63,661 bases of DNA, filler included, from Lenisia limosa (GCA_001655205.1; 7 parts of 7 records of this genome joined end to end with filler, not necessarily neighbours in it), one strand, 5' to 3'. Shown: positions 1 through 20,042, counted from the whole stretch's first letter. The notes: generated from the sequence alone by a model not told the origin. Numbers and translations: made by a program.

Positions 1-54
1 CTATGTTTTTTTTTTTTTCCAAGATCCTTGTTCAAAAAAAATAATGCTCTTCAG

Positions 55-1165
55 CTGCCGAAATTTCAAAGGAGACTCTGGCGCAATACATTGCGTTCGC
101 GCGCGAAGAGGTGAGTAGTATTATCGGCTCATCTAAAGATGGGAGGGGGGGTATCTTTAGCTTCTGTAGTAAAGTGATAAAAGTGTTATTTTTGTGTGTA
201 TTATCTGAAAGTACAGTGTCCGCGATAAGGACTGACACGATGGATGATGAAAAAAGCATCGTCCGATTTTCAACATCATCTTTATTTTTTACATATCCTC
301 CAACCATTTTCAACATTATCATTTTTTTTTTTTTATTCCCAAAACATGCCTAACCACCATATAGGTGTCCCCGGTACTAACTGAGGACGCTTCGTCTTGC
401 CTTGTGGAAAATTACCTCGAAATGAGAAAGAGCGGTACTTCAGGAAAGACCATTACTGCTACTCCGAGACAGGTAGAATTTAGGAATTGTGAAAATTTCA
501 GGAATTGTAAAAATCTAATTTTGGTATTAGCGAGTCGGATTGTGTTGATTGCTTCACTCCGATCCTGATAATGACTGGATTTCTCAATCAATTTTGATCA
601 TCTCAACATCCACAAATTCGGTTTTCTATGCATCTCATACAAATCCGCAAATATTCCGTTTTCCTTCGCTGACTCATCAGCTTGAGTCAATGATCCGTAT
701 TTCCGAAGGCCTGGCTCGGATGCACTTCCGATCCGAAGTGCTGAGAAGTGACGTCATCGAGGCCGTTCGTCTCATGAAGGCCGCTCTCCAGGTAGGGGAG
801 GGGTGGAATATGGGTGGCTGTGTGTTAATGTTATCAAAGCCGTTCACTTTCTGAAAAGGCTCTGGGTCAGTTAATCCTAGTCTATCGGGGGGTGGGGGTA
901 GAAGGGGATGAGTTTTGACATATTTTCCCAACTAAAAAGCAAGGTCTTTTGTATCGTAGTTTCATTAAATTTTCGTTTGTTTTTTTGTTGGTTTGGAGTT
1001 TCAGTTCGTGATTAGTACCTTTGCGCCAATATTCTTCATCAAAATTTCCTTCGTTTTACTCACCCCCCATTTTGTGCGCCACTTTCCCATTTTACCCCCC
1101 AGGTTGGTGCTACAGACCAAACGACAGGCGCCATTCTGATGGATGATGCCAAGGCGAGGCAGTGA
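55..1165 (+). CDS. MCM4: DNA replication licensing factor MCM4, 3' part (4 exons: ~55-110, 365-472, 681-791, 1103-1165)
   Basis: Phase-0 GT-AG exons splice to AEISKETLAQYIAFAREE-VSPVLTEDASSCLVENYLEMRKSGTSGKTITATPRQ-LESMIRISEGLARMHFRSEVLRSDVIEAVRLMKAALQ-VGATDQTTGAILMDDAKARQ*. ITATPRQLES..R.SE (arginine-finger/sensor II region) plus ATD..TG is the MCM4 pattern. Confidence 0.88.
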
Positions 1166-1571
1166 TGAGTGTATATTTTGTATATTATGAAGGTCTTTCA
1201 ATTGGCACTGTGTGACTCTTTGTAACCAACTTATTTCTAAAATAAAGAAGATTTTGTTCAGTATGACAATCAGAACATTTGTTCTCTTACGTCACAATTA
1301 CTGTCTACAAAATTGCCACTGAAACAATTCTTTCAGTCCATTCAGAATCTTTGGCATATCAGATATGTCAATGAAATAAACTAATCGCACGCGAGTACTT
1401 CTATATAATAAGAAGTATGACTGTTCCACCATTACAAACCCTGCTAAATATAGCTCATCAATTCTATACCAATTGAAATTACCATAAAATGTAAGATACA
1501 GGAAACAATTCTATTAAATCAAAACAAAACAAAGCACCACCAGTGCAATAAAAAAAGAGAGATAGACTCAC

Positions 1572-1903
1572 GAAAACGCTCTCAGCTGCTCCCTTCGACG
1601 ACGTGAAGCCTCCAACAAGGCTGAATCTGAGGGACTTGGCTCGGGCCTGAAGTATTAAGAAGACTTCAACTTTTTGTTCAAAAAATACTCTCGACTATGA
1701 CACTCAAGTCGAAGGTTCGATTTATATCTACTTGTGCCCCCAATGACCGCCATTGAAGTCGAAATGGTAAAAAGATAGCATGAGTGGTCATCCCAAGTTT
1801 AACTGAAAGGCCTCATTTCAGTAATTTATCGAGAAATTAAGTCCATTTTCGTCACGAAGTGAAGCCCAACTTGTTGGTCAATTATTCCGAGTGGCTTGAG
1901 GTC
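1572..1903 (-). CDS. Hypothetical protein, partial exons
   Basis: Exon-like segments with splice signals (e.g. PEPSPSDSALLEASRRRREQLRAF ending at a GTGAG donor at 1571). Phases could not be fully reconciled. Confidence 0.3.
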
Positions 1904-2667
1904 TTTGCGTGGAAAACTATCCCAAAAAGTGACATGAATAATACGTGTGTTATGGTTAAGTCGGTAAAATATCGATATTTGTCGAGGTTTTATCGAGAAT
2001 TTCAGTCTTTTTTTGGGACCGGAGGGAAGCCATAGTTATGATGTTAAAAAAAAAACATAAGCTGTGGTGGCGCGAAAAGTTAGACTGATTGATAAATAAT
2101 AAATCTGTGAAAATCGATTTATGACTTTGACTATGTAAAATCCTTTCCACCCCCCCCCCCCCNNNNNNNNNNNNNNNNNNNNNNNNNNNNNNNNNNNNNN
2201 NNNNNNNNNAAAACATTTGCCAAGAGCAGCATCCTCTTCAGAACGCACAAACAGTGCAATAATTTACTATACCTCTAGATTAAACCGCTGCCTTTAAAAC
2301 TAAAATATATGCTTACTACATAAAATCGTGTGATTCGGGGAGGTGAGCGCCAAGGAGCGTGGGCGCGGAGGTATGGTAATTTGTTTGATATCACATGTAT
2401 TTATTTGTTTCCCTGGATTTTTAAAGTATATTATTTCTCTTGCTCAAAAAAATCGTGACAATCCATTGCTTACGTTCCCTTCTCGGTGTATGCCTTGATA
2501 CTCGTGAACGTTTTGCGAAGCATTGCCTTGTATTCGTCTAGAAAATGAGAGAAGATGGGGGGAGGGGACTTATAGAAAGAGGGGGAGGGATTTCGAACCA
2601 TATTTTTGAAATGTGGGATGGGGGGCTTATCGAAGTAAAAATAAAGCAAACTGAATCATCATCCATG

Positions 2668-5034
2668 TCATGATATCAAGCATTCCAGATCCGCATCCGT
2701 ACTCAGAGAAGTTGCCTTGGCCTCCATTTTGGCCTCGAATGTCGTGGATAGTTCTCGTATTCGCCAGTTAACAACGGAGAGAGAGCCTGATTCGGCGTTA
2801 CTCGCGAGGACCGATGACAGGGCGTTGATGGTGTTTTCGCTGGACGGTAAAAGGTGGACCATTTATTATGGCTAAATATGGGAATCCCATGCAAATATAA
2901 AATTGAATTACCAAATACTACATATACTATATACATGTATAATCCCAAGTCGATGTGCTGTAGTAACTGTACATATCCTTACCCAAACCCACCGATGCTT
3001 GATTTTGAGCCCCTCAATGGGAGACTCTGAAATGGACGAAAATGACTCAGTAGAAGAATGGGTATTTGAATATTGGGTATTGGAAGAGGGGTACTTTGGA
3101 GCGAAGGGTGTAAGGCTCGGGTCTAATGGAGGCGATGCGTGGTTTGCATTGTTTTGTGACGGATTGCCAACACGAGCAGGTGGCTTGAAGGGTTTGTTGG
3201 GACTTGTTTCGAAGGAGGACGGGGGCGGAGGTTCATCATCGATGGGCGAGATGTGGCGTGTGGGGAGAATTAGAGGTTTTCGAGTGGAGGAAGCAGAGAC
3301 AAATCCAGTGGTAGACGACGGGGCTTGGTTGAGATAAAGCGTTTTGTTGATGGAAGGCTTCTGCGAGGGGTCAGACTGACCAGGCACCTTGTGTTCCATA
3401 GAATCTCCCATTGAGTTGACAGACAAGCGTCGTTCGGAGTTTCTGGAGGAGTCAGACTCGAGTTTAGACTCGCAAAAACCACTTGAGTTCACATACACTC
3501 TGGAAGAATCAGACTGGATGGTGCGCGTGATTGACGCCACTTTGCCTGCCGAGGCGCGAAGTAACGACGGCGGCTTGAACTGGGTCTTGGCACTTGCCGA
3601 GGCTGGGGTGTCAATTGTCCCGGTACGGCGGCGGAGGGATCCCTGGGAATTTAGCTGGGGGTATCTTCGATAAATAATGATATTCAACAGGGTTTTTTCC
3701 GGACCATAGGGAATATAGTGTTCTATTCATACGTATCCGAAGTCGACGAGCAGCAGCATTGTGCCTGGTACTTCACTTCGGTTCGAAAAAAGACTGAATT
3801 TCTCGATAAGTCCTCGAAAACTTTCGATATTATACTGGTCTTTTTCGAGACGAAGTGAAGCACTAATTGTGCCCACCAACCTTAGGCTTTGGTTTGTTGG
3901 CATTTTGGACGATTTTGGCCTTGAGGGCCGCCATACCCGATACTTCAGGTCTCTCGATGATCCCCCTTCCAACATGCTTGCCTGTAAGGAGGGGGGGTGA
4001 GGGATTAACGGAGGTGACGGTAAGGACGTAAAAAGATGAAAAAAAAAACAACTCTGTTTGAGGGCAAGTCATGGTGTTGAGGGGGTGAGATCCTTATCAG
4101 ATCCGGCTCCGTGAAAATAATTATTTGTAGATATAATTGACGAAAATCAATAGGGTTTCGTCACAATAAGTCACATGTTACAATTCATTAATTTACTATT
4201 TGATTGCACGAAGTCTGTGTCATATATCAGATGTAAATAACGACAATGATGTGAAGGAAATAAAAATAGTATTAAATGCAGAAGTGTGTTTAACAACGGG
4301 TTTTTTTTCAGAAATGGCTCTATGGTGGGCTTGTGTTTTGGTCTTTAGACCTTAAACACGGGAAGTCCAACATGGTTGTCCTCCTGACACTGCAAATTAT
4401 GGCTAAATACAACATTAATCTATGAGTATACAAATTTGAAAATAAAAAATACGAGGTTGAATGTGATAATCCATCTCTTACTAAACCTCAGAATTTGTAT
4501 AAGTGAGATAAACAGTTGGAAGGAAGATGAAGAAGGTCCAATCGAACCCTTTAACCCCACCGGCATACCGACTAACGAGGGTGGGTTGAAGGCGGTTTTC
4601 GATGAAGCTCTACCCCTTGAAAGGGCACTGGAAGTTACCATGACGCTTGCAGGAAGGAAACCTGGAATTTCAGGGTAGGGCTTGAACCTGGTACGAAAAA
4701 GATTTGACAAAACATCGATATTTATCGTGAATTCATCCCTTCTGGAACCGAAAATGAAGCTCAAAAACAACATATCGTACCACATTCACCTTAATAAATG
4801 GCGAACATCATTGAATCAGAAATAACTCAAATATTATGATGTTTCGTTCATGTATATAATATTATCTTACTTTCAAACAAAAACTCAACATACCATCACC
4901 GCATTCATCATCATCAGAGGCAACCATCGAATCAAACGGCCTAGCTTCAACAATTCCCGCGCTATCTTCTTCATCATGGTCAAGAAGACTGTCGCGTTTT
5001 GCCCGTCCGGAGTATAGGCTTCTTTTCTTGGGTG
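2668..5034 (-). CDS. Hypothetical Ser/Pro-rich multi-exon protein, 5' end off contig
   Basis: Exons with GT-AG ends: PKKRSLYSGRAKRDSLLDHDEED (5034-4898), FKPYPEIPGF (~4689), GKHVGRGIIERPEVSGMAALKAKIVQ (~3985-3884), a long S/P-rich exon (~3650-2990) and terminal ENTINALSS...LECLIS*. Confidence 0.65.
3770..3863. mobile_element. MITE family A (ACTT subfamily), intronic
   Basis: CTTCACTTCGGTTCGAAAAAAGAC...GGTCTTTTTCGAGACGAAGTGAAGCAC followed by TA; imperfect terminal inverted repeats around a TCGA-rich core. Confidence 0.8.
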
Positions 5035-5190
5035 CTGAATGAGTCAGAATTGTGAGTGTTTTGTAAGAGCTTCCCTTTTGGTTCCAAATATATGCTGCTG
5101 CACCAAAACCGTGTCATTAATTCAGAAACCGTGTCATTAATTCAGANNNNNNNNNNNNNNNNNNNNNNNNNNNNNNNNNNNNNNNNNNNN

Positions 5191-5202
5191 TTAATTAATT
5201 AA
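5191..5202. other. Artificial contig linker TTAATTAATTAA in N padding (also 23088-23099, 29281-29292, 30864-30875, 60830-60841, 62381-62392)
   Basis: An identical 12-mer with stops in all six frames sits in the middle of N runs six times. Confidence 0.97.
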
Positions 5203-5576
5203 NNNNNNNNNNNNNNNNNNNNNNNNNNNNNNNNNNNNNNNNNNNNACACCTTTCCCTCCATACATATTGTGATAGATACAAAAAAAAAATAACTTCACG
5301 GTGTTTTTTAGGCTATTTCATAAATATACATGTATATGTATAAAAAAAAAACACTTTGTAGAAAAACCACGCCTTCCATTGCTCTAGGAACTTCCAAAAA
5401 CGTAGATGATATAAAATAACACAACAGAGGCCCAATATACACAAAAGAAACTTCAGAATGGCCCAATATACACTTCCCGAGATATAATGTCGAACAACGC
5501 CATTTGGCGAGATTTTTTTCATCGAGGGTTGGACAAACTATTCAGCAAAACAGTTCAACAACTTTTCTACAACATA

Positions 5577-5654
5577 CAGTGACAGGGATAAGTCTTGACC
5601 GATTTGCTATGTGAATTACCAAGGAAAATAGGTCAAGACTTATACCTGTCACTG
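5577..5654. mobile_element. MITE family D (Tc1/mariner-like CAGTG ends, TA flanks)
   Basis: TA-CAGTGACAGGGATAAGTCTTGACC...GGTCAAGACTTATACCTGTCACTG-TA; ~24 bp TIR. A related 43-bp copy lies at 54619-54661. Confidence 0.8.
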
Positions 5655-5692
5655 TATATACAGTATATATGTAAACATCACGGTTACCAGTA

Positions 5693-5789
5693 GGGCTTCC
5701 CTATCGTCCCAAAAAAAGACTGAATTTCTCGATAAATTCTCGATAAATATCGACATTTTGACGGTCTTTTTCGAGCCGTAGGGAAGCCC
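5693..5789. mobile_element. MITE family A (CCTA subfamily), near-complete copy
   Basis: TA-GGGCTTCCCTATCGTCCCAAAAAAAGAC...GGTCTTTTTCGAGCCGTAGGGAAGCCC; ~28 bp imperfect TIR. About 18 full or partial copies occur in the window. Confidence 0.85.
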
Positions 5790-6503
5790 TGTTAAAAGAG
5801 ATATTCGCTCATACCCCCCTCCCTTCCCCTACAGCGGGTTTTGCGTAGCGGTCTTGGTTGAGGAGTTGAAGAGTGGGTGAAGTCATGATTTGGGAAATGG
5901 GAGAGGATCTGAACCGTAAGCTCCGAGGGTTGAAAATGGATGGCCATTTGTGAAGAAAAAAAAAACAGCACTGCTGCCCAATACAACATTACACACACAC
6001 ACACGCGCGCGCGCTCACAGTCACAGACACACAAACACACACAAAAACAAAACATACACACAAAAACAAAAACATAACAAAACACAAAACATAAAAAAAG
6101 GGTAAAATTATAAACAACAACAACACAGAGGGAAAAAAGGAAACATAAGGCTAGGCCAATAGGAAAATCTGTTCAAGCTTGTTAATGAGAAATAATAAAG
6201 TAAGAATCTGGCCAAGACCGTTGACGTACATCAAGCTGATAAGAAAATATGAACATCATCTAAGAGGAATATTCACCAAGCTTGATATGCCAAGTTCGAC
6301 ATTTAAACATGTAATTCATCATGAACGCAGCTGTTTTACACACTGACTATGATAGGTCTTATCCGATATAATCATATTTCCTTGAGAAAAATCGTTTAAG
6401 ACTGTCTCTATCAACCCCCATTCTCGCTCTGCTTTAAACTCTCAATGAACCCATAACAAAATACAGGAAAGAGCTGAAAGAAAAACAGAAAGCAAGCACG
6501 AAC

Positions 6504-6943
6504 CTGTTGGGAGAGCTCCGAGCTGGAGAGGCAAGGTCAAGCGGTGGCGGTGATAACGGCCCTGATGGAGTGTACTCCTTCTCTAAGGGGAACAGAGGGG
6601 ACCGGTCAACAAATCCTCTGCGGGGATCGGGGGAAATTGGAGGGGTTGGCTGGCGACTCATTGCTGCCATATAGGTAGGCGATTTAACTTGGCTACGGCC
6701 TCCCGAAGGGGCGGAGCGAGGTCGATAGGTGGTAACATCTTCTAATGAAATAATGTGCGATATGAAGAATCCGCGGGGAGGTTCCGATGCGGTAAAGTGG
6801 TTAGCTATGGTCAAATCCAATAGAGTTTCCCAAATAAGCACCACATGCCTACTGCTTGGAGCAACAGTTGTGTTCGCAACACCTTTCGTTCGTTTACATC
6901 GCGGAGGCGTCATTAATAAATAGAACCTGCTATAGTTAGCCAA
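6504..6943 (-). CDS. Hypothetical Ser/Pro-rich protein exon
   Basis: Long open frame (…PRSAPSGGRSQVKSPTYMAAMSRQPTPPISPDPRRG…) ending at an AG|GTTCGT donor at 6503. Downstream exons are unresolved. Confidence 0.5.
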
Positions 6944-7798
6944 CAGGAGGTAACCGACAGGGCTTACAAGAAAAGATTGAGATGGAAACTACATTGTACA
7001 CCTGGTTTTTTATTTCATTTTGCATTTTCTTCATTAACAGTATTGACTCCAAAGTTTGTTTTACATTTTGAATAGATTTTTTTGAAAAAATTTTCAGTCA
7101 TCAGTCAGCTGCGGCACCGTACTTATTTTACATGATTTCGCAGTTCTCTTTGCTGCTCTTTAATCTTTTTTTGCCAACTTTTTGCCATAGAAAGAAGGAC
7201 TAAGAAGGAAAGAAGGAAAGAAGAAGAAGAAAGAAACAGAATACAAGAATTAAGGAAAGAGAAGTATTGACAGACGTTCATCCTCTTATTTCAAGTTATT
7301 AACAACCTCCTTGTTCTCCATGTGTTCTCTTTGTTAATGAGACAGAATTACGACGGTGAGCCGACTTTATGGAGAATGCCATGCATATAAACAAATTTAC
7401 TTCAAGCATTATGGCGTCTAGACAAAATTCCCTCTTCTCGGTTATCTTCCAATTCCAAGTTTCATGTGGGTGGGTAGTATGCTTGCAATAAACACTACAC
7501 TATGGCGCATTGACTTGGAACGCTTGTGAAAAGTTGGGATTCCATTATTTGCATGGGAGGACATTTATCTGTCAAATCTGACCATCTTATTCAAATTACC
7601 AGGGACACCGCATATGACAGCTGAAACAAATCGTTCACTGTTTATTTGAACACAATTAGACAATTAGAGCCCCTATGATCCTTGAACTAGTAAAAAAAGT
7701 CTATTAGGACGAATATATCACAAATATTTAAACATTGTTAATTATGATTATTTCAATCACCTTATTTCCAAAAATTCGAATTTTGATAACTCCTGAAG

Positions 7799-10700
7799 TC
7801 AATTCTGCATCAAAAATGCTACGAAGGGGACGTGGAGGTGGTGAAGGCTCTCTTAAAAAGCGGAACTAGAGATCTGGAAGCTAGCTCTGCTCAGGTAGGA
7901 AACTAATAACAAAGTTGCTCTCTCTGAATGGAGATCCACTTTCGGTAATAAAAATAAATTGAATTTATCAATTAATCCTCGAAAACTTTCAATATTTTTT
8001 ACCGTTTTTCACTCTTAGAAATAATATAATCTTAGAAGTAGTGGTTCACTTCGATCTAGAAAATATATGAATGTCTCGATAAATCATCGATATACTATAT
8101 CATATTATGTAGTATAGTATACTAGTAATTATATCTTTTTTATGTTATATTTCGATAGTTTCCCGATGGTGTTTGTACTAGAGTGAAGCCCTAAATAAGT
8201 ATGATACAGTTTCACCTTCAGGTCTCAGAAATATATTTAATAACGCACGTATTATTTTAAAGCATGTTTTTACCATGCAGTATGTGACCCCCTTACATAG
8301 GGCATGCCAGGGAGGCAGTCTAGAGATTGTACAGCTACTACTGGCTCATGGAGCCAAGGAAGATCCTGTTGATACTGATGTAGATGGGTCTGACGATATT
8401 GTTTTGGGGTCTGATGATGTGATGTGTAGATTGATGATGATGTGAGGTAGGGGTTCAATTAAGAAGGGTTAATTGTGTTGATGTATTACAAGACTTGTTG
8501 ATACCGATGCGGGTTACTGAGCTTCACAATATCAATTTCATCGAAATATTCATTTGTAAGTGAAGCGATTCAATAAGCATTTTCGTCACCCCACCACCTA
8601 CTTCAGAAATACCCACTTTTCTTTTTAGAGCTTCAACTAAGGTTCCAAAGAACTGATGAAATATCGATATTTATCGAAGATTTATCTTAAATTCAGTCTT
8701 TTTTTTTGTGAATATTACACTTGTGATTTTGTAGATTTACACTCCTCTCTTTTGGGCTGTGAAGTTTAACCGGAGTCCAGTGGTTCGGTTTTTCTTAGAA
8801 AAGGGCGCGAGTCCAAGCAGCCGTGGCGGGGNNNNNNNNNNNNNNNNNNNNNNNNNNNNNNNNNNNNNNNNNNNNNNNNNNNNNNNNNNNNNNNNNNNNN
8901 NNNNNNNNNNNNNNNNNNNNNNNNNNNNNNNNNNNNNNNNNAAGTTTCACATTATAAATATAAAAGACAATGTAAGGGAGGGGGATGTCCCTGCTGTGAA
9001 AGATGCTGATTAGGAATTGTTACTAACAACATTTTTCTATTGTCTAAAGTAATCCATTACCTTACTGTATTACAATACACTACGGCGCATTGACTTGGGT
9101 TTCTTATACAATTCTTCAAATTTCCATATTGCACCATGGGATTCCCATTAAAATAATGGGACTCAACTTTTTCAGAAGAATCAAGTCGAAAATCCTTTTT
9201 TCATCACATCCCAGTACATCACGCTGTTACATGCGGCCTGTTCTGTGAGCTTGAAAATGGTTGAGTTGGTAATCTCCTTCGGTGCTGATGTTCAACTACT
9301 GGACAATCTGGTTGGTGGAGTTGTGAGCCACTTTAGTTTCAAATCAAGATAATACAACAACTATAGGGGGATACCATAAAAACAAATTACCATTTTCCCG
9401 CGCCCACGCCTCTTGGCTCCCTCAAGACTAAGTTGCAATACAAATATCCAGGAAAAAGTAAAATTTCCGTATACTTTTTGTCGTTTCTCACGAAATACAC
9501 AGTTACTTGGCCACAGCAACTAGGCTTTGCTTCTTTTATGTTTCATTTTGTTTTTGTATTCTTTTTGTGTCTTTGTTTTGATTTGTTTTGATTTTGTGAT
9601 TTTTTTATGTTTGTTTATTTGTAAGATGAATGTTTTTTTCAGGTCAAACAGTTTTTTGATCCATAATTTTCAATACTTTTAGGAGGCTCGTTTTCATTTA
9701 ATTTCTTATATTTCCTCAGAACAGAAGCGCATTGTTTTATGTCACCGAAGACGGGCGCATTGTAGATCTTCTAGTCCATCTTGGAGTGGATGTTAACGGT
9801 GTCGATACTTTTGTAAGCACCACGGGAACCGTAAGAACTGATACTAATATTGAGCTTTGTCTTGTATTGGGCTTCCCTATGGTCCGAAAAAGACCTTTTA
9901 AATATCGAGATTTATGGAAGATTTATCGAGATATTCGGTCTTTTTGGGACCGTAGGGAACCAACCCATGTGCAATAGGAACGGTGGTGTTTTTGTTAAAA
10001 TATACTGAAATTAGAAGTTCACTTCGGTCAAAAAGACCGATAAATATCGGTAGTTTTCGAGGATTTATTGAGAAATGCAGACCAAAGTGAAGCCCTATCT
10101 GAAATCCTCTTCTTGACCATTTAGAATAGACCCCCTTTATCAACTGCCGCTCTCAAAGGAAGGTATGTAGCTATATATGTGTATGCATATCATATTATAT
10201 ATGTAGCCAAAATAGTTTGATCTCATTATCTATGTAGAAATGAGAAAAAAAATAAGATTATCAGGCCGAAGCCGTCCACACCATCATATTATCTAGCTAT
10301 ACTTGACATATCATATGTATGTATTTATAATGCAGGTATAGATGATATGTAATAGGATATGTGATATAAACGACTTCGACCAGACACAATCTTGTTTTGT
10401 ATCCCATCTCTCTACATAAAAAAAACACCAGATCAGCAGTTGTGAAAGCGCTGTTTGAACATGGCGCCAACATCAACCTGAAAACAGCATCGGTAAGGGA
10501 GTAAGGGGTAACGCTTAAATAATGGTCTTGGAAGGACTGAACTTAAGCCCTCCATTCCCCTTTATCCTAACGCCTGACAAATACACATAAAAAGCTGTGT
10601 GTGCAGAGATGTAAGGCAAAAGATTGCGTGAATTTATATAATACTATAATCCAATATCTCTCTTAGCGTGATGGTGTGGACGGCTTCGGTCAGACAACCT

Positions 10701-11667
10701 TGTTTTTTTTATTTCTCATTGCTATAGCTATAATATGTAGAGAATCCCTAAAGTAGCTCTTGTTAGGCACGTAGCAGTTTTGCTACTCTAGTGATCATTC
10801 ACCCCTGCCCCAGGGCGCAACACCTTTCGAAGAAGCGTGTCATGGAGGTCACGTGGACGTAGCTGATTTCCTAGCTCCTCCTCCAGGAACTGTCTCAAAC
10901 TCAAGATCTGATATCGAGGTTCTTGGGATCCTCGTAATAATATGCTTGTTGAGTCTTTGAGGAACAGATTTCATTTAACATTTAACCTGATCTTCAATAT
11001 CGCCAGCATAACGTGCTTATTGGGGACAAGATAATGAAATTTCATACCTGGTTTTTAGACAAATATTATATTAGGGAAGCCCTAATTATAACCTCTTCAG
11101 TCCAAAGCGCTGTTCTACGCCTGTTATGACGGGCAGCATCCAAACATTGTCGAGTACCTTGTCGACACTCGTTGGGTGGATGTTAACTCCACCAAGAACA
11201 AATATTGTGTAAGGTGGATGGACTGCCACACAAGTCTTGTCATACATTGTTGATTCTGGGTTTTGATTCATATATTTTCCATTTTCACTCTCCCTCAGAA
11301 TGAAACTCCCCTGTTTTGTGCTTGTGATGATGGCCACTCTGATATTGTGAAGTTTCTCATTTCCCGAGGAGCCAAAGTTAACATCAAGTCAAACTATGTA
11401 GGTAGCGATCCAATATCTCTTTTAGCGTGATGATGTGGTGGACGGCTTTGGTCAGATCTAACCTTCCCACATCTCTAGTACAGTCTTTTTTTACCTTAAA
11501 TTTCTACAGCGCGTAATGAAAGATGTTTGGATTAATAGTATCTTAATATGTAGAACAATGGCCAAACGCCCCTGCATTATGCAGTTGAACACCCATGCCT
11601 CAAGTCGATCATTCATCTCTTGGAGGCGGGTGCGAGTATCCATCTCAAAGACAAACACGTGGGCTAA
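7799..11667 (+). CDS. Ankyrin-repeat protein (~10 repeats), 5' end uncertain
   Basis: Exons 7799-7894, 8281-8379, 8735-~8833, 9215-9310, 9720-9812, 10125-10162+10432-10492, 10814-10918, 11101-11208, 11299-11397, 11554-11658. They encode repeats such as YVTPLHRACQGGSLEIVQLLLAHGAKED, NETPLFCACDDGHSDIVKFLISRGAKVN and GQTPLHYAVEHP. Confidence 0.92.
9869..9960. mobile_element. MITE family A; a second copy follows at 10015-10095 in the same intron
   Basis: GGGCTTCCCTATGGTCCGAAAAAGACC...GGTCTTTTTGGGACCGTAGGGAAC; the second copy ends GTGAAGCCC-TA. Confidence 0.8.
10232..10287 (+). repeat. Interspersed repeat family C (~75 bp); other copies at 10650-10730(-), 11408-11465(-), 15030-15090(+), 19275-19325(+), 62610-62690(-)
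   Basis: Shared core TC(T/A)G(A/G)CCGAAGCCGTCCACACCATCA preceded by AGAAATGAGAAA(A)n, in both orientations and all intronic. Confidence 0.8.
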
Positions 11668-11693
11668 TTATTTGTTAATCTTTTGTACTCTGA

Positions 11694-11787
11694 GGCGCAT
11701 CGACTTGGGATTCTTATGATAAGGTGGGATTCCTATTATTTCTATGGAAATCTAAAGAAATTTATGGGCTTCCCAAGTTCATGTGCC
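11694..11787. mobile_element. MITE family B; partial copies at ~2880-2965, 7497-7560, 9075-9150, 63290-63320
   Basis: GGCGCATCGACTTGGGA...TCCCAAGTTCATGTGCCG-TA inverted ends; the consensus left end TA-CGGCGCATTGACTTGGG is seen at 9080. Confidence 0.72.
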
Positions 11788-12468
11788 GTATCGTGTATAG
11801 AGAGAAACCCTATTCATGATATACTATGTAAAATATCTATTTATTAAGAGTTAATTGAACTTCTGGGAAGCTGTTTATTTTTCTCTCTTTTCGTCATAAT
11901 CTTTCTAAAATATGCACTGCTGTATTAAGCATTGCCTTCGGTTATCAAAAAAACACTACTCCTCGGTATATTAATATTATACATTGCTTTTTGAACCGAG
12001 ACAGGAGGCACCTTTGTCTACATGGTTGACAGAATTAGGGAAAATCACCTTTAGACAGAGCAAAGCAAGGGAGTGTGACCGCTCTTCTGTTGGACTATCA
12101 ACCTCAACGAAATTGAGTTTATTCTTGTATTCGTGTCTTCATGTTTATTTAATGAAGTTGTTTATCATGGATTGGGCTTACGGGGAACAGTCTTCGGCCG
12201 TACGTGGGCGGGGACGCCGGTTCATTCAGTAATATAGCAATGAGAAATAAAAATANNNNNNNNNNNNNNNNNNNNNNNNNNNNNNNNNNNNNNNNNNNNN
12301 NNNNNNNNNNNNNNNNNNNNNNNNNNNNNNNNNNNNNNNNNNNNNNNNNNNNNNNNNNNNNNNNNATAGATCCATGAATGAATAAGGAATAGCCCCTGCC
12401 AGAGTGGAGCTTCACGGGAGACATATAGAGCCGCAGAAGACCCACCAAAGCCCGACACTCGTTTTCTG

Positions 12469-12667
12469 TTATTGGGAGGGATATCGCTCAGTGTGTGAGT
12501 AGGCATAATACTTTCGCAGTTGGCTCATGTACCCGTTGACGACTTTGGTGAAGCTAATCTGTTTGTCCACTAGAGAGCACATAAGGCGGTCGGGTCGAGC
12601 AATGATGATTCATGTGAGGTTTTGCCAAAATGCCACGACCTGCGGGCGGCGGGTCAGTAGATGAATA
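12469..12667 (-). CDS. Hypothetical protein, last two exons (12640-12667, 12469-12569)
   Basis: Splicing a 70-nt GT-AG intron gives YSSTDPPPAVDKQISFTKVVNGYMSQLRKYYAYSHTERYPSQ*, with consistent phase 1. Confidence 0.45.
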
Positions 12668-13431
12668 CTTTAGGAAATGAATATTGGTGTACGATACTAT
12701 AGGGAATTCACCATATTCTTCATAAAATTATCCTTTACCTACAATTTACCAATTTACCTATCCCACCCCCGCAACAACAGCCTATTGGGCTTTATTGTTA
12801 TAACCCAGATATAATGACCCTGTGAGTTTCAAGCTGCAACAAAGTTGAAGTTGATTCTGAGTTTTTTTTCACATTTGGTTGATTCAAAGGCTGGATAATA
12901 TCATTGTTGTTGTTTCGACGATTTATCGAACTGAACCCCAGTTTTCCCTTGTAAAACGGTTGAATACATTGACAAAAGCGGAAGCACAAGGCATTATGCC
13001 TGAAAAGCTGATTTCTACATGACAAGCACTCTTTCAAGGGGATGTTACTTCTTACCCCCTCCCGCGAACCCCACCATTGATCTAGGGGTGGGTATACATG
13101 TAGTATATATTATATAAACTTTGTACTATATAGCATAGAGAGGTTGTCTTTTAATATGTCGGAGCGATGGGGTGAAGTTCTAGCAACGCATCAATTCTGA
13201 GCTCTCTGGAGGCAAGGGGTGTGTTCTTGTCGAAGAATTTCTAAACTGGTAGCAGAGCCAGAATTCGGGTTAGATTTTTACCTTCCTGAGTTGTAATTCG
13301 AATCAAAATTCTATTTTGGAAAAGTGGGTCAGGCTTTGTTGAGGAGCATGTATTATTTGACTTCATCTTTCTGGCTCCATATATGGAAAAGATCATACAC
13401 AGACCACGATAAGTGGGAAAGTCTAAAAAAC

Positions 13432-13617
13432 AGCCTTTTCTCTTCTGACAGCCCTTTAAAGCTTATAATGACGTTAGAAACAGAAAGTCAGACCCCCAAA
13501 ACCAAAAATGGTCGAATCAGATTTTAAAATGACGTTAGTAGGCTCCAGATATGAAGCCTGACATTTTGACTGAAACGTCGTTATAAGTTTTAAAGGGCTG
13601 TCAGAAGAGAAAAGGCT
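13432..13617. mobile_element. 186-bp MITE with 44-bp TIRs
   Basis: AGCCTTTTCTCTTCTGACAGCCCTTTAAAGCTTATAATGACGTT versus the reverse complement of the right end: 42/44 identical. No clear TSD. Confidence 0.8.
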
Positions 13618-14590
13618 TTCAAAGCCCTATTTTCCTAATTAGGCAAGTAAAGAACTTTCTGGAACTTTCGAGGTCCGAATCACAAAAATATCGCAAAAGT
13701 TATGAAACTTCCACAAACTTAATTCCAAATTTGAGAACATCCCAAAATAACAAAAAGAGCAAGATTTTTGAACTGATTATTTCAGAAAATGACCCCGGGC
13801 GCCCGGCCCGAAGTGCCAATTTTCCTGCAATTTGTCTGGCTTGTGGATCGTAAAGGATAGGTTTTTGAGGGCCAACTTCAAGGCTACAGGAGGCGATATG
13901 TTGTTAACCCAGTTTTTCAACTAAATAGTTATCTCTTATTAAAAAAATAAGATATTTTGCCAAATATCTTGGTTTTTAGCATGCATATCTATACATATAA
14001 TATTATAACACATGTAGATATTATATTGTAATATATATGTAGCTATATTATGTACTATTGCTAAAAAATCATTCATTGAAGATCGAAAATATCATGCAAT
14101 GTTTAAAATTCACTTTTAAGTATATCAAACCTGTATTTGAAACTTGATTTTGTTGGCCTCATCGTCAAAACACCCTCAACTTCAGAGCCGAATCCAAAAT
14201 AAAGCTTTTGCATGGATTTGGGCAATACACTTGATTGAACAACAAAAGGCAATTTTTTTTTGAACAATATACAGCAGAGGGATTAATACAAAAACAATAT
14301 TCTAAGTCAAAATAAAAACTCCAAAAGCAAAGTACTGCGTATCTGAAAATGAACCTTATCGTGTATTTTATTTTGGGGAAATATCTTTCAATGTTCTTTN
14401 NNNNNNNNNNNNNNNNNTCTAATCTTGATGGATGATGGCAAAAATACGAAGTTGGATTTGATAGAATATCAATTCACGCTGAGACGTTATATATTATATG
14501 GTATAATATTATAATATCTCGATGAATCGCAGTGAGACTATGAGACTACAACAAATATTCATAATAAATAAAATACATAACAAATAATCA

Positions 14591-17500
14591 TCAATAGTAG
14601 CCAGAGTAATTGTCTTGATAGCAATCATTGTACGAATTGGCAGGGCTGGAGTGATGGTGGGAGCCTCTTCCTCTTCCCCTTCCACGGCCTCTTCCGCGAC
14701 CTCTTCCACGACCACGACCTCCTCTCACCTGGAGTGATAAGACAACAAAAGGATGTCAAAGGGCAGAAATGATCAAAGAGCTGTAGAAATGAAGCTATTA
14801 TGGCTGATCGGGCTGTGGATACGGGTTATGAGGGATGTAAATAATATGGGTATTTTTTATCAAATGGCTTCAGATGGTTATTATGATCAACATGATATGC
14901 TCGTTCTATTCCTTACAAATAACAATGCTAAATGAATTTCACTTCAACCTACAAATTTATACTCCTCATCGGTAGCATAATGTTGTGAGTTCCTGGCCAA
15001 GAAGTCCTTCCGAGACTGATGAGGTTAAAAAATAGAAATGGGAAATAATTAGAGTATCAGGCCGAAGCCGACCACACCATCACGTGTATAAGGGATATAA
15101 TGATTAAAAGTACATAAGAGTCCAAAAGTCAAATTTCAGTTCCCTTAGAAAATGACCCGTAGAGTCATTTTCATTGAATAGACTCGAAATTTTACCAGGT
15201 TTTACCAGCGAAATAAAGACCACAAATCATACTTGAGGATGCATGATGAACCAACCTGAGACTTTAACCAGCCCTTGGAAAGCCCAACCAAGTGCTGAAC
15301 AACACTAAGTAAATCGTCTCTTTCTCCGTTGCTGTCCTAATGAAATTACATATTAATAAGTCCTCAATAAACCCTCAATAAATTCATTATAGATCCTCGA
15401 TAAACCCTCAAGAGCACCACGATATCCTTTATTGAAAAAGTGTATTTTGATGAGAAGAAAAGAAACCAGCATTGATGGGGTGAATTTCGAAAGTTCAAAT
15501 GACTTTAGCACCAAAGCCTCATTTATGATCACAAAAAGATGAACCAATTTCATACTCCGTAAGAAGAATTCCTGAACTTCGAGTGACAAAAAACGAACCA
15601 TTAGTGTAAAGCCAAACTCACAATGAGTGTGCAGTTTTCCGCCTCGGTGAAAGAGTCCACGCTTGGTGCTCTTACAACAGCCTCTTCCTAATATGGTAAA
15701 TAGTATCAGAGACTTCCTAATATGGTAATAGTGCCAGAGAATTCCGAATATGGTAATAGTGTGAGACTTCCTAATATGATATATTCCTAATATGGTAAAT
15801 GCCAGAGAAAACTACCTCCTCACTTGCCTCTCAAACACGTTGGCTTATAATGATGATAAACGATATTAATCACCTCCAAAATCACTATATAATACAGTGA
15901 ACTGTAATTATATCATAACAATAAATCTTCGAACATACTGCAAGAGTTGGCTTGAGAAGCTTAAAGTATTCCATATGCCAGCCCTTGTTTGCAACACCGT
16001 TGATAGTTTCGCCCATTTCTTCGTGGTCATCACTATACTGATGAACAAAGACGAATCACTATGCTGATGACACAAAGTCGAATTTCATGGCCATCACAAG
16101 CACAGTGGTGGGGGTACATTTTCCGCACACTTTCAGTAAAAAAGATACGAAAATAGTAAATTAGGGGTGAGAAACTGTCTTATTAGGAAAGAAAGTGTCC
16201 GGGAAAAGTGCCTGTACCCAAGCAAAGTGTCCTAATGAATTAAGAACAGACCTTAGATCTTGATACTCAGTATGGTCATCCAGGTCGAACTCGAACGTGC
16301 GGTCAGCTATTGCAGCCAAAGGTTGGTCAAATGCAAGGCTCCGAATCTGTACTGTTAAACAGGATTTGATACAATGATGGACGCTATTTAAATGTTTGTC
16401 CCTAAGGAATGTCAGAGTTTGATAGAGACCTGTCAACCAATCTATCCGTGGGGAATAGGGTTAACATGCATGGGTAGCAAACATGAGGATTCACCTTAGC
16501 AATATAACCGAATATGATGTTTATTGCAATCTTTTTGGGAATAATAGTAAAATCATCATTTGGCGTGCCCCAAGAGTATGGAGATTTGGATTTACCACAC
16601 ACATATGGACTGGCCAGACAAACCCCCTACAAATGACCACAATACTATCCTGATGAACGCGTACGGTTGGAAGGTCGTTTCTGTTGCTTCCAATCGGCAG
16701 AATAAGGAAAGTCATTCGTTTCCTAAGAAAATGTAAAATCACTAAAATTTGAGCAGTGGGTACACTGCACTTCGCTTATAAACGCTCATAGGATATATTG
16801 ATCATAAACTGGTCAAATGAAGAGGTACTTCTAATCGAAAATCTCCTTCTCCCTTCAGCATTCCATCATACAGGCACTTCTAATATCGAAAATCGCCCCC
16901 CCCCCATCAGCATTCCATCATACACGTCTTGGAAACCACCATCCTCAAGGTTGGCACTGGAGATGTAGCGAGGCAATAAATTGATCCATTCCACAATCTA
17001 AAGAAGTTAGAAAGAGATACGTAAGGGGTCATCCTAATTTTACAGTAAAAAATGTTACATGTTAATTGTCAGTTATCGAAATGAAGTTATATTACTAATT
17101 GTTACAATGGAGCATCATGTCGAAGTTCAAACCTCTCTAGGGTTGACCAAGGGGTAGTAGAGCATTTGGTAGCAAGAATTGGGGCAGAAATATGTTCTCA
17201 ACTGGATGGTTACATATTCAACGGCATGGGTACTCGATATGTTTACCCATATCTACAAGTAATATGATCATATGACCGACTATCGAGTCGAAATGATAAA
17301 CGAAGATAACGCGAGTGTTCATCACGAGTGTATCATAGTTTCATTGAGACTTGTCAATCAATTATCACACGAGTGAATATGAGGTATCATATCACTGCGT
17401 GGAAAATGATAGTTCACACATGTGAAAATGACCCAAAAGTGATATAATCCCGGCAGTATGTTTATTGTGGTTACACTTACTTCATGGTAGGATGTAGTGT

Positions 17501-19720
17501 ATCCCTCAATTCTCTCGTAAATATCTTGGGCCAAAAGTTCACCAGTTTCATCTTCGACCTAAAAAGGATTCCGATATCATACTAAATATGAACAATTCAC
17601 GAAAAAAACAGAAATGCCGGAAAGTTCACTCTCACGGCCTGGAAAAACAGTGTAATTTTCCGGAAAAACACTCAAAATCCAGTCAAAATTCGGGAAATTA
17701 GACAGTTTATCTCACTCTACAACTTAGAATGACTAGACAAACCCTCAATAAAAGGGACTTTAATAAACACTTCAACCGTTCTCAGTTATTTCCAGCAAAA
17801 ATACCCTTGCCTCCAGGATCAGGACCTTCTTCTGATACGCTAACTCGAGCTTTTCCCGCGAACATTACTCGTATACTCCATTATCGTTACGTACACTCGT
17901 TAGCTCCGCGACAGAAAAACCCGAAGCCGGAGGAGAGGGTTTTTCTGAAAGGAAAATTCTAGTCTTTTCGAAGATAGTGTTCATTTACTCCTCTACAGGG
18001 CTAGAGCTCACCTTTTTGCGAATGGCATATCTCCAATTGACATCCGTTTCACTGATCTACAGTGTCAAAATCTATTCAAATAAGCCCTAAAAAGTTCTTC
18101 ATGAGGTACTGCGGCTACATTCTGAATATATAATTGCAGTATTTTGCGTGGCCCAAGGATATGGATATTCTCTCACTTTCCCTCCAATAGAATCAAGATA
18201 AGACCTGGCGCGACTCAAAGTGTCCTAAAATGATAAGTATGTGGAGGACTGTTTTCTATATTTTGCAATAAAATTAAAGGGTGGAGACACAAAAACCAAA
18301 AAATAGAATTGAAAGCAGTTATTAACAATTAGGGCTTCCTTCGTCCAAAAAACTCATCTTTGTTTTTCAATAAATCCTTGATATATTTTGACTTATTGAC
18401 TGTTCCTGAAACAAAAGGCACCCCGGAAAATAGTAACAACGAAGAACTAGGGCCCGACTCGTAGTGACATACTTGGAAAATGGCAAATGACTGTCCGTTA
18501 ATTCTGAAGACTGGAATCAACCCGGCAGCGCAAATGCCCTTGTTGTTCTAAAGGTGTCAAAATAAGAAAGCCACTCTGAACCGACCAAGGCCCACAGCCG
18601 TTGGTGCCAGGGCAGAAACAGAGTTGAAGGGAGGGATCAAACCCAAAAGCAGCGCAATTGAGTTTTATTTTTAAAAACTATTTTAGCAATTGTTATCTAC
18701 CCTCCTGAGTAGGTAGATGACAAGTAAGTTAAAGTTTACTTTTTAAAAAATTTAACAATAAAATATTACTATATTACTTATTTTATCAATCGCTCACTTA
18801 AATTTGTCAGTCATATTTGTCAATCGCACTTAAATTTGTCACTCATATTTATCAATCACTCACTTAAATTTGTCACTCATATTTATCAATCGCTCACTTA
18901 TATTTGTCACTAATATTTATTAAAATAAAATCAATCTCGCCCTTATTGGGTCAACAGTCCCCGTGTCGGGCTGTGTTAGGGGCTAATGATGATAAACAGA
19001 TAAACAGCGATGATACCATTAATTAGGGCTTCCCTTAGGTCAGAAAAAGACACCAGCTTATCTCGATATATTTCGATAGAATATCACCCATTTTTTCGTC
19101 TGAGGGGAATCATGTATATTACACAACAGTTTCTTGCCCCCTCTTACCACGGCACGTGGGTTAGTGCTGTTGATCTTGAAAAGAGTTTCCTGTCCACCTT
19201 CAGGCCTGAAAGGATCAAGAGAGTTTTGTTAAAAAGACACAACCATAATAGACCCATACACAGGGGACAGGATATGTAGAAATGAGAAATAGAGAGAAAG
19301 TATCACCGAAGCCGGACACCATCACGTTTATAATGGTTCTAATGAGTTTGTACAAAATAGGGACCAGAATAGACATATAATGTAATCTGATAAATTGAGG
19401 AAATGGCAAATCAACCAGTTGGGGCAATATTACAAGTTATGCCCAAGAAGGCCCACGTGTGTCTCATTCGGCGGAATTCGGCGGAGCTCTGAACAAGTCA
19501 TTATCCAATCAAAATGTCAATCAATGTTCAACTAATCAAGACAAGGGGCAAAGAATCTGTGAAAGAGATTTTTATTGTTCGCAGTTGTAGCAACCAGGCA
19601 AGGAGGAAGAATACCTATTATATACACATGATATTGATATGACGGATTTGTTACAGTTGGCGGCAAATTTAGGAAGAAAACAGAGAAAACGGAAGAAACA
19701 GATGATGATGCAATCGCCAT
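14591..19720 (-). CDS. Multi-exon protein: divergent Nudix domain + Trl1-type polynucleotide-kinase-like domain + C-terminal RG repeats
   Basis: Phase-consistent exons 19434-19488, 19148-19205, 18473-18547, 18177-18224, 18012-18056, 17481-17558, 17133-17252, 16924-16997, 16665-16722, 16495-16626, 16252-16346, 16074-16128, 15939-16037, 15622-15687, 15256-15336, 14953-15015, 14591-14728. Motifs: ICAAGLIPVFR, GGKISETDVNWRYAIRKKVEDETG, VEWINL; MTFLILPIG, SWGTPNDDF, AIADRT, GVANKGWH; (RG)10. Start codon 19720 is tentative. Confidence 0.7.
18783..18920. repeat. Intronic minisatellite, ~34 bp x4
   Basis: TTATCAATCGCTCACTTAAATTTGTCA(C/G)TCATAT in direct tandem with no spacers. Confidence 0.9.
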
Positions 19721-20042
19721 TTTTTGGCTCAAAAGTTTGGAGGAAAGGTAAATAGCTGAAACAGAAAACAGCCATTGATGATACCAGCAACAGTAGAGCA
19801 ACAGATAAGAAACAGCAAAGAAAGTCACAGCCCTTCTTACATTGTTGTGGAAAGGGTTAGGGATCATTCTGACTTAATATTGTTTGTTGATTGAATGGAT
19901 GGGGGTCGTTGCAGTTTTGCTGTTCTGCTCTGTAGTGTTTTAGTTCTGTAGAAAAAGCAAACTTAAAAGGAGAATAAACGGAAGAAACGGAACTAGCAGA
20001 CCAGATCACAATTGGATCACAAGATCTGCTCTCCGTTTGTGC

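Follow-up and report, generated by a model that had tools for sequence, protein, structure and literature searches.

We analyzed a 63,661-nucleotide stretch of DNA from the breviate Lenisia limosa (GCA_001655205.1; seven parts of seven records of this genome, joined with filler), which we refer to as the window, and found that its minus strand carries an intron-rich, expressed gene that runs from position 19867 to position 14591. The gene has 16 exons and 15 introns and encodes a lineage-restricted protein of unusual architecture in a single 366-codon frame. The product consists of a Nudix-like N-terminal domain, a strongly acidic region, and a tail that is rich in Arg-Gly (RG) dipeptides and Tyr. 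Our preferred reading, in which we place about even confidence, is that this is an RNA-associated protein that combines the RG/Tyr tail with a divergent Nudix-like domain whose hydrolytic activity is weakened or absent.

The gene structure was worked out from assembled transcript sequences and from translated transcripts. The RNA and DNA evidence came from Logan contigs of one polyA RNA run and one DNA run, which were aligned to positions 14450-19900. One 823-nt polyA RNA contig spanned 11 introns, and the intron ends read CT..AC on the plus strand and thus GT..AG in the orientation of the gene. This contig extended from 18209 in exon 5 to 14663 in exon 16, and the 12 exons underneath it could be joined into a 274-codon open frame. 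Two EukProt proteins of Lenisia limosa (EP01086; Trinity/TransDecoder), both from one Trinity gene, covered exons 1 to 10. P0001 (103 aa) was recovered from a 5.8-billion-protein collection with a 59-residue fragment that includes the putative Nudix box, and P0002 (197 aa) was its cluster mate. The first 190 residues of our model were identical to P0002 and the first 96 were identical to P0001, and the 5' end of the model was thereby fixed. Because the Trinity proteins (exons 1-10) and the RNA contig (exons 5-16) overlap in six exons, we assigned all of the exons to a single transcript. The Trinity proteins were probably derived from the same RNA data as the polyA run, and they represented an independent assembly rather than independent data. 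In the complete model, the spliced frame is 1101 nt in length, the exons are 27 to 138 nt, the introns are 120 to 600 nt, and all 15 introns have GT..AG ends. The start codon is the ATG at 19867-19865, and an in-frame TAA is found 9 nt upstream. The gene is real, spliced, and expressed.

The first four exons were identical to the N termini of both P0001 and P0002. Exon 1 (19841-19867; 27 nt, residues 1-9) begins with the start codon and is followed by the donor GTAAGA, exon 2 (19457-19488; 32 nt, residues 10-20) lies between the acceptor CAG and the donor GTGGGC, and exon 3 (19148-19205; 58 nt, residues 20-39) completes a short leader of 39 residues. Exon 4 (18473-18547; 75 nt, residues 40-64) encodes AAGLIPVFR and the first strands of the Nudix-like domain. 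Exon 5 (18177-18224; 48 nt, residues 65-80), which was identical to P0002 and was covered by the RNA contig from 18209 onward, ends with the GGK that starts the Nudix-box-like motif. Exon 6 (18012-18056; 45 nt, residues 81-95) was placed by the RNA joints 18056/18177 and 17556/18010.

The exons that follow were all covered by the RNA contig. Exon 7 (17481-17558; 78 nt, residues 96-121) encodes VEDETG, exon 8 (17133-17201; 69 nt) encodes residues 122-144, and exon 9 (16924-16997; 74 nt, residues 145-169) encodes VEWINL. Exon 10 (16665-16722; 58 nt, residues 169-188), the last exon shared with P0002, encodes FLILPIG and RNDLPT. AIADRT is encoded by exon 11 (16252-16346; 95 nt, residues 189-220), and an acidic stretch and GVANKGWH are encoded by exon 12 (15939-16032; 94 nt, residues 220-251). 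Exon 13 (15622-15687; 66 nt, residues 252-273), exon 14 (15256-15336; 81 nt, residues 274-300), and exon 15 (14953-15015; 63 nt, residues 301-321) lead to exon 16 (14591-14728; 138 nt, residues 322-366 and the stop codon at 14593-14591), which was covered by the contig up to 14663 and then continues as a contiguous open frame.

The original prediction for this locus had proposed a 17-exon open reading frame that the six-frame track misses, in a range that reached 19720. The minus-strand, multi-exon frame was indeed absent from the six-frame lists of open reading frames, and 11 of its introns were seen directly as joints in RNA. The exon number needed correction to 16, and the range was too short: position 19720 falls inside intron 1 (19840-19489), and the true ATG at 19867 lies beyond it. 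The placement of Nudix-like and kinase-like exons in one gene, as opposed to separate genes, was also sound, since both sets of exons are on the same RNA contig. Thus, the earlier observation was confirmed in part, and its interpretation, which we take up below, was partly supported.

The Trinity assembly also contained alternative or aberrant isoforms of this gene. P0001 keeps intron 6 (18011-17950 is the start of that intron), which adds 8 residues before a premature stop. P0002 departs from the model after residue 190 and ends in a 7-residue tail that is encoded nowhere in the window; P0002 may therefore represent a chimeric contig.

Several landmarks in the first half of the protein suggested a Nudix-like domain. 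All of the proposed Nudix landmarks (AAGLIPVFR, GGK, ISETD..VNWRYAI..RKK, VEDETG, and VEWINL) were found in the mRNA, in exons 4, 5 to 7, and 9. Residues 78-102 (GGK-ISETD-VNWRYAI-RKK-VEDETG-E), which are encoded between 17538 and 18185 in a span that includes two introns, form a degenerate Nudix box, and this motif is located at the expected distance behind two short hydrophobic strands. Glycines, a basic residue, and two or three of the helix acidic residues are retained in the box, and Asp occupies its first acidic position. The box can be read in two registers, each of which requires a one-residue shift of the box. With canonical spacing, the order is G79-x5-D85-x7-R93, followed by K94 (in place of Glu), K95, V96, E97, and D98. 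In the register chosen by the hidden Markov model (HMM) and hhalign paths described below, KK stands for the catalytic RE pair, V occupies the aliphatic position, DE takes the place of EE, and G101 serves as the Gly. Whether the catalytic RE was replaced by KK, as had been proposed, depends on the register: the Glu is a Lys under both, and the Arg (R93) is retained with canonical spacing.

Language-model comparisons pointed to the same family. The top-ranked cluster in a feature search of the ESM Atlas scored 0.97 and shared 177 of 256 features; it belongs to Nucleocytoviricota, and 74% of its members carry PF00293. NUDIX was found in 73 of 100 hits, and Nudt16-like clusters also appeared. When residues 36-170 were used alone, 88 of 100 hits were NUDIX, in addition to Nudt16-like clusters. 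When six Nudix Pfam families were removed, the top family was Sa_NUDIX, which is again a Nudix family (0.89, 90 features shared), and families without Nudix in their name reached at most 0.87 and at most 88 shared features. Taken together, the language-model features and the degenerate motif, rather than a significant alignment or a predicted fold, led us to propose that residues ~40-168 probably adopt a highly divergent Nudix fold in which Lys replaces the Glu of the RE pair.

A number of results weighed against this assignment. The canonical Nudix box (G-x5-E-x7-R-E-U-x-E-E-x-G-U) had no match in the 366-residue product. A relaxed box pattern (G79-x5-D85-x7-R93-x3-E97-D98) was present and recurred in only 66 of 20000 protein shuffles (0.33%), but this pattern was defined after the sequence had been seen. 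Similarity between language-model features is a lead and establishes neither homology nor fold. In Pfam, no NUDIX match was obtained with P0002 (residues 1-190), even at E <= 10, or with the 59-residue box piece, and no Nudix match was obtained in PDB sequences, PHROGs, or NCBIfam. An HMM built from eight E. coli Nudix proteins scored -1.3 bits, a value that was equalled by 169 of 2000 shuffles, and hhalign gave P = 0.09 for the domain, which the unrelated C-terminal half of the protein also reached. In favor of the assignment, the top HMM and hhalign paths, which were not significant, both coincided with the box and had the right register. In the case of the original claim of an N-terminal Nudix domain with a degenerate site, a Nudix-like domain with an incomplete motif was supported and the profile check with PF00293 was negative.

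These alignment-based results, all of them negative, raise the alternative that the protein contains no Nudix domain: it would be a fast-evolving breviate orphan with an RNA-binding-type low-complexity tail, and its motif and language-model neighbors would be convergent or spurious. AlphaFold2 models made without an alignment were unusable (predicted local distance difference test scores of 33.7 and 34.8 for two models), no homologues were found, and a different family gave a subthreshold match over part of the same domain. Specifically, residues 61-133 of P0002 (exons 4-8) matched PF08882, acetone carboxylase gamma, with E = 0.004 (17.8 bits versus a cut-off of 21), and PDB entry 5svb_C, an acetone carboxylase gamma structure, matched the same residues with E = 0.0065; a ..R.YFCP.. 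stretch is common to both proteins. Although this was the sole alignment-based match of the protein, we judged the relation to be due to chance, as it was below threshold, covered 57-69 residues, and had no support among the language-model neighbors. We regard the absence of a Nudix domain as unlikely. A first Atlas hit of at least 0.95 arises about once per 100 shuffled proteins, and here the hit shared 177 features; in addition, after removal of the main Nudix families the signal passed to other Nudix families, and the motif has the expected distance from the two hydrophobic strands. We also considered an internal duplication in which the C-terminal half would be a second Nudix domain, and rejected it; the local alignment score of the two halves was 29, compared to an average of 27 for shuffles, and the hhalign result did not rise above noise.

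No relatives of the protein were found. Protein word-index searches with P0002, and with an alignment overhanging its C terminus, returned only its own isoform cluster. Scans of IMG/VR and JGI metagenome contigs with P0002 produced no relatives, tblastn against phages produced only noise, and an exon-exon junction sought in metagenome contigs had 0 matches. No contig records encoding P0001 or P0002 were found, and no full-length isoform or orthologue was present in the protein collections searched. The reach of these homologue searches was limited by word seeds, length filters, and exact 8-mers. By sequence comparison, then, the protein is an orphan in the sense that it has no close relative in the collections searched. 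The lack of a homologue that would show conservation also counts against the Nudix assignment.

If the domain is a Nudix fold, the next question is whether it still hydrolyzes its ligand. A Nudix hydrolase that is active despite its variant box, such as an RNA decapping enzyme or a 5'-pyrophosphohydrolase that is recruited to RNA by the RG tail, is compatible with the same language-model and box evidence, and Nudt16-like decapping enzymes are among the nearest named clusters. Lys at the RE position would have to be tolerated in such an enzyme, and the metal ligands would come from E97, D98, E99, and D85. These are four acidic residues left in or beside the box helix, and the first three could still bind metal, which is a further point against a loss of activity. 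On the other hand, a Lys takes the place of the RE Glu, which belongs to the set of residues in MutT-type enzymes that cannot be lost without a drop of orders of magnitude in kcat (the catalytic rate constant). Both registers of the box also carry the one-residue shift, and the absence of any profile match suggests strong divergence. An active hydrolase is, in our view, improbable.

The C-terminal tail is of low complexity. Residues 322-366, with a net charge of +8, contain ten RG dipeptides (residues 323-343) followed by an end that is rich in His, Ser, Asn, and Tyr; 5 Tyr are found among the last 23 residues. Both parts lie within exon 16, the RG run at 14725-14663 and the His/Ser/Tyr-rich end at 14662-14594, and the run was covered by the RNA contig up to 14663. 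The (RG)10 plus Tyr-rich end that had been reported earlier was thus present as described. The DNA that encodes the tail showed only an imperfect 12/24-nt periodicity. A closely spaced cluster of RG dipeptides in a low-complexity region, as found here, is what defines RG/RGG-motif proteins.

Under our preferred reading, in which a divergent Nudix-like domain is joined to an RG/Tyr tail, the tail would bind RNA non-specifically, self-associate, and offer a target for arginine methylation. The ligand of the Nudix-like domain would be either of the nucleoside-diphosphate type or an RNA 5' end, and the nearest language-model neighbors of the domain suggest a lineage of the decapping type. Hydrolysis would be weakened or lost, by analogy with NUDT16L1/Syndesmos, an inactive Nudix protein that still binds RNA and thus offers a precedent (PMC6294507). 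A more specific version of this proposal is that breviates possess a Nudix protein of their own that does not catalyze but reads RNA 5' ends or nucleoside diphosphate-X (NDP-X) metabolites, with a new acidic domain and a condensate-forming RG/Tyr tail. Such an architecture would have no counterpart in current protein collections, and the protein would be a regulator of RNA that evolved independently of Syndesmos/TIRR and CFIm25, to which it would be analogous but unrelated. We consider this version a long shot.

The region between the Nudix-like domain and the tail had been interpreted as a kinase domain of the type found in the fungal tRNA ligase Trl1, so that the whole protein would be a fusion of a pseudo-Nudix and a pseudo-kinase, both acting as sensors of RNA ends. 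Residues 169-321 comprise 153 residues with a net charge of -12 and a very acidic stretch at 205-232. Most of the proposed kinase landmarks were in the mRNA, namely FLILPIG and RNDLPT (exon 10), AIADRT (exon 11), and GVANKGWH (exon 12), but SWGTPNDDF was intronic. The resemblance to Trl1 comprised only short pieces: a strand and loop at FLILPIG, AIADRT, and NKGWH in place of the RGNNH of the lid (PMC5728400).

The Candida Trl1 kinase provided the points of comparison. Its P-loop (422-GCGKTT-427) lies between strand beta1 and helix alpha1, the motif with the general base (Asp445) follows ~20 residues after the P-loop, and the lid loop (532-RGNNH..; R..RGNNH, with essential Arg and His) is ~106-110 residues from the P-loop; a G-loop is also present, and the KIN construct covers residues 401-636, or ~236 residues (PMC5728400). 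In the Lenisia protein, NKGWH is ~55 residues past the loop position that would replace the P-loop, about half of the Trl1 distance, and the region as a whole has 153 rather than ~236 residues. A Walker A motif ([AG]-x4-G-K-[ST]) had no match in the 366-residue product.

The only GKS, like the proposed counterpart of the general-base Asp motif, was found within intron 10. SWGTPNDDF sits there in a 74-codon stop-free stretch, and a formally spliceable 132-nt in-frame cassette with AG/GT ends (16495-16626, minus strand) would contain both CGKS and SWGTPNDDF. The RNA contig bypasses this cassette with the joint 16346/16665, and the RNA contig depth in that bin was 0; SWGTPNDDF is therefore not part of an exon of the assembled transcript. 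Stop-free stretches of such length are common on the same strand of the region (152, 99, 84, 74, and 72 codons). Within the cassette, the GKS and NDD motifs are 4 residues apart, and there is therefore no room for helix alpha1. The cassette stretch had no Pfam match and no meaningful PDB match. Contigs can lose rare isoforms, and on the evidence of contigs alone, a minor isoform that includes the intron 10 cassette could still exist.

Searches with this region were likewise negative. The pieces queried were single exons, the intronic stretch, stop-free stretches around exons 10-12, residues 150-197, and residues 189-248 (a 60-residue piece), and when each was used as a single-piece query against Pfam and PDB, none matched a kinase family or any structure of Trl1 (PF08303, AAA_33, or Trl1 PDB entries). 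Single-exon Pfam scans returned nothing beyond low-complexity noise on the tail. Exon 12 (31 residues), when searched with HMMER against 1.84 billion cluster representatives, had 0 matches, which means that this protein collection lacks the C-terminal half. By these sequence criteria, the acidic region has no detectable relation to P-loop kinases. The kinase reading is not supported, because one of its key motifs is absent from the mRNA and the remaining resemblances are too short to count, and we consider the two-part fusion very improbable. Of the double pseudo-enzyme that was originally proposed, what is left is possibly a pseudo-Nudix followed by an acidic region.

Several other features of the locus were recorded. 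A high-copy dispersed repeat is located at ~17359-17440 in intron 7, where contigs of the DNA run break and leave many loose ends and the summed word depth rises from ~32 to 865 and 5923 in two bins. A smaller bump in DNA-run depth at 14996-15177 in intron 15 (204 compared to ~32) suggests another repeated element. Tandem repeats were found at 18782-18920 in intron 3 (34 nt x 4.1), at 15684-15778 at the boundary of exon 13 and intron 12 (28 nt x 3.4), at 16823-16924 in intron 9 (52 nt x 2), and at 16029-16083 at the boundary of exon 12 and intron 11 (26 nt x 2.1). A separate 200-nt contig of the RNA run (depth 4.2) covered 15406-15604, entirely in intron 13, with an extra A after 15587; it could represent unspliced pre-mRNA, DNA carry-over, or another repeat copy. 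Upstream in the window, on the opposite (plus) strand, an ankyrin-repeat gene at 8182-11427 has exons that each encode approximately one repeat, separated by introns of ~0.7-1 kb, with Pfam Ank matches down to E = 2.7e-8 on single stop-free stretches. A 184-codon stop-free stretch that is rich in Pro and Ser lies on the minus strand at 6437-6988 and had no Pfam match.

As matters stand, the locus can be described as a protist orphan gene for which a single domain assignment is plausible. Breviatea, which are sister to animals, fungi, and apusomonads, are a poorly sampled lineage. If the front half is indeed a Nudix fold without catalysis, the protein would be another case in which a nucleotide-hydrolase fold was independently re-used as a binding module, here joined to an RG/Tyr tail, and it would be of moderate interest for research on pseudoenzymes and ribonucleoprotein granules. 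A kinase of the tRNA-ligase type, as a second pseudo-enzyme, would have been the more striking claim, and it fails on the transcript evidence.

Among known systems, the decapping-type branch of the Nudix family (Nudt16/X29, PF22327; giant-virus and phage PF00293) comes nearest by language-model features. The likeness extends to a core of ~130 residues and to two short hydrophobic strands that are followed, at the box position, by GGK-x-x-E-x-D ... basic-x-x-E-D-E-x-G. Unlike members of that branch, the Lenisia protein lacks a significant profile or pairwise match, has Lys for the RE Glu in a box shifted by one residue, and continues for ~200 C-terminal residues that end in the RG/Tyr tail. With its 15 introns, the gene does not represent a recent insertion from a virus.

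CFIm25 (NUDT21) is a catalytically inactive Nudix protein that binds RNA. NUDT16L1/Syndesmos/TIRR is another (PMC6294507). The Lenisia protein resembles both in a Nudix-type domain whose catalytic Glu residues are replaced and in the proposed role of that domain, which is to bind RNA and not to act as an enzyme. The substitutions differ, however, with Gly/Leu in Syndesmos and Lys in the Lenisia protein. Syndesmos and CFIm25 are also single-domain proteins that lack an RG/Tyr tail, and no sequence relationship between them and the Lenisia protein has been shown. In the case of the Trl1 kinase (PF08303; PDB 5U32; PMC5728400), the sole likeness is a hydrophobic strand and loop, a D-R after a hydrophobic strand, and a G-x-H that recalls the lid loop; the Lenisia region differs in having no P-loop, an intronic counterpart of the Asp motif, half the motif spacing, and about half the size.

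RG/RGG tails of the FUS, hnRNP, and Scd6/Sbp1 types have a composition that is typical of RNA binding, methylation by protein arginine methyltransferases, and condensate formation. The ten RG dipeptides and the Ser/His/Asn/Tyr-rich end of the Lenisia protein resemble these tails, but the repeat is strictly RG rather than RGG, and its partner is a Nudix-like domain, not an RRM, KH, or Lsm domain.

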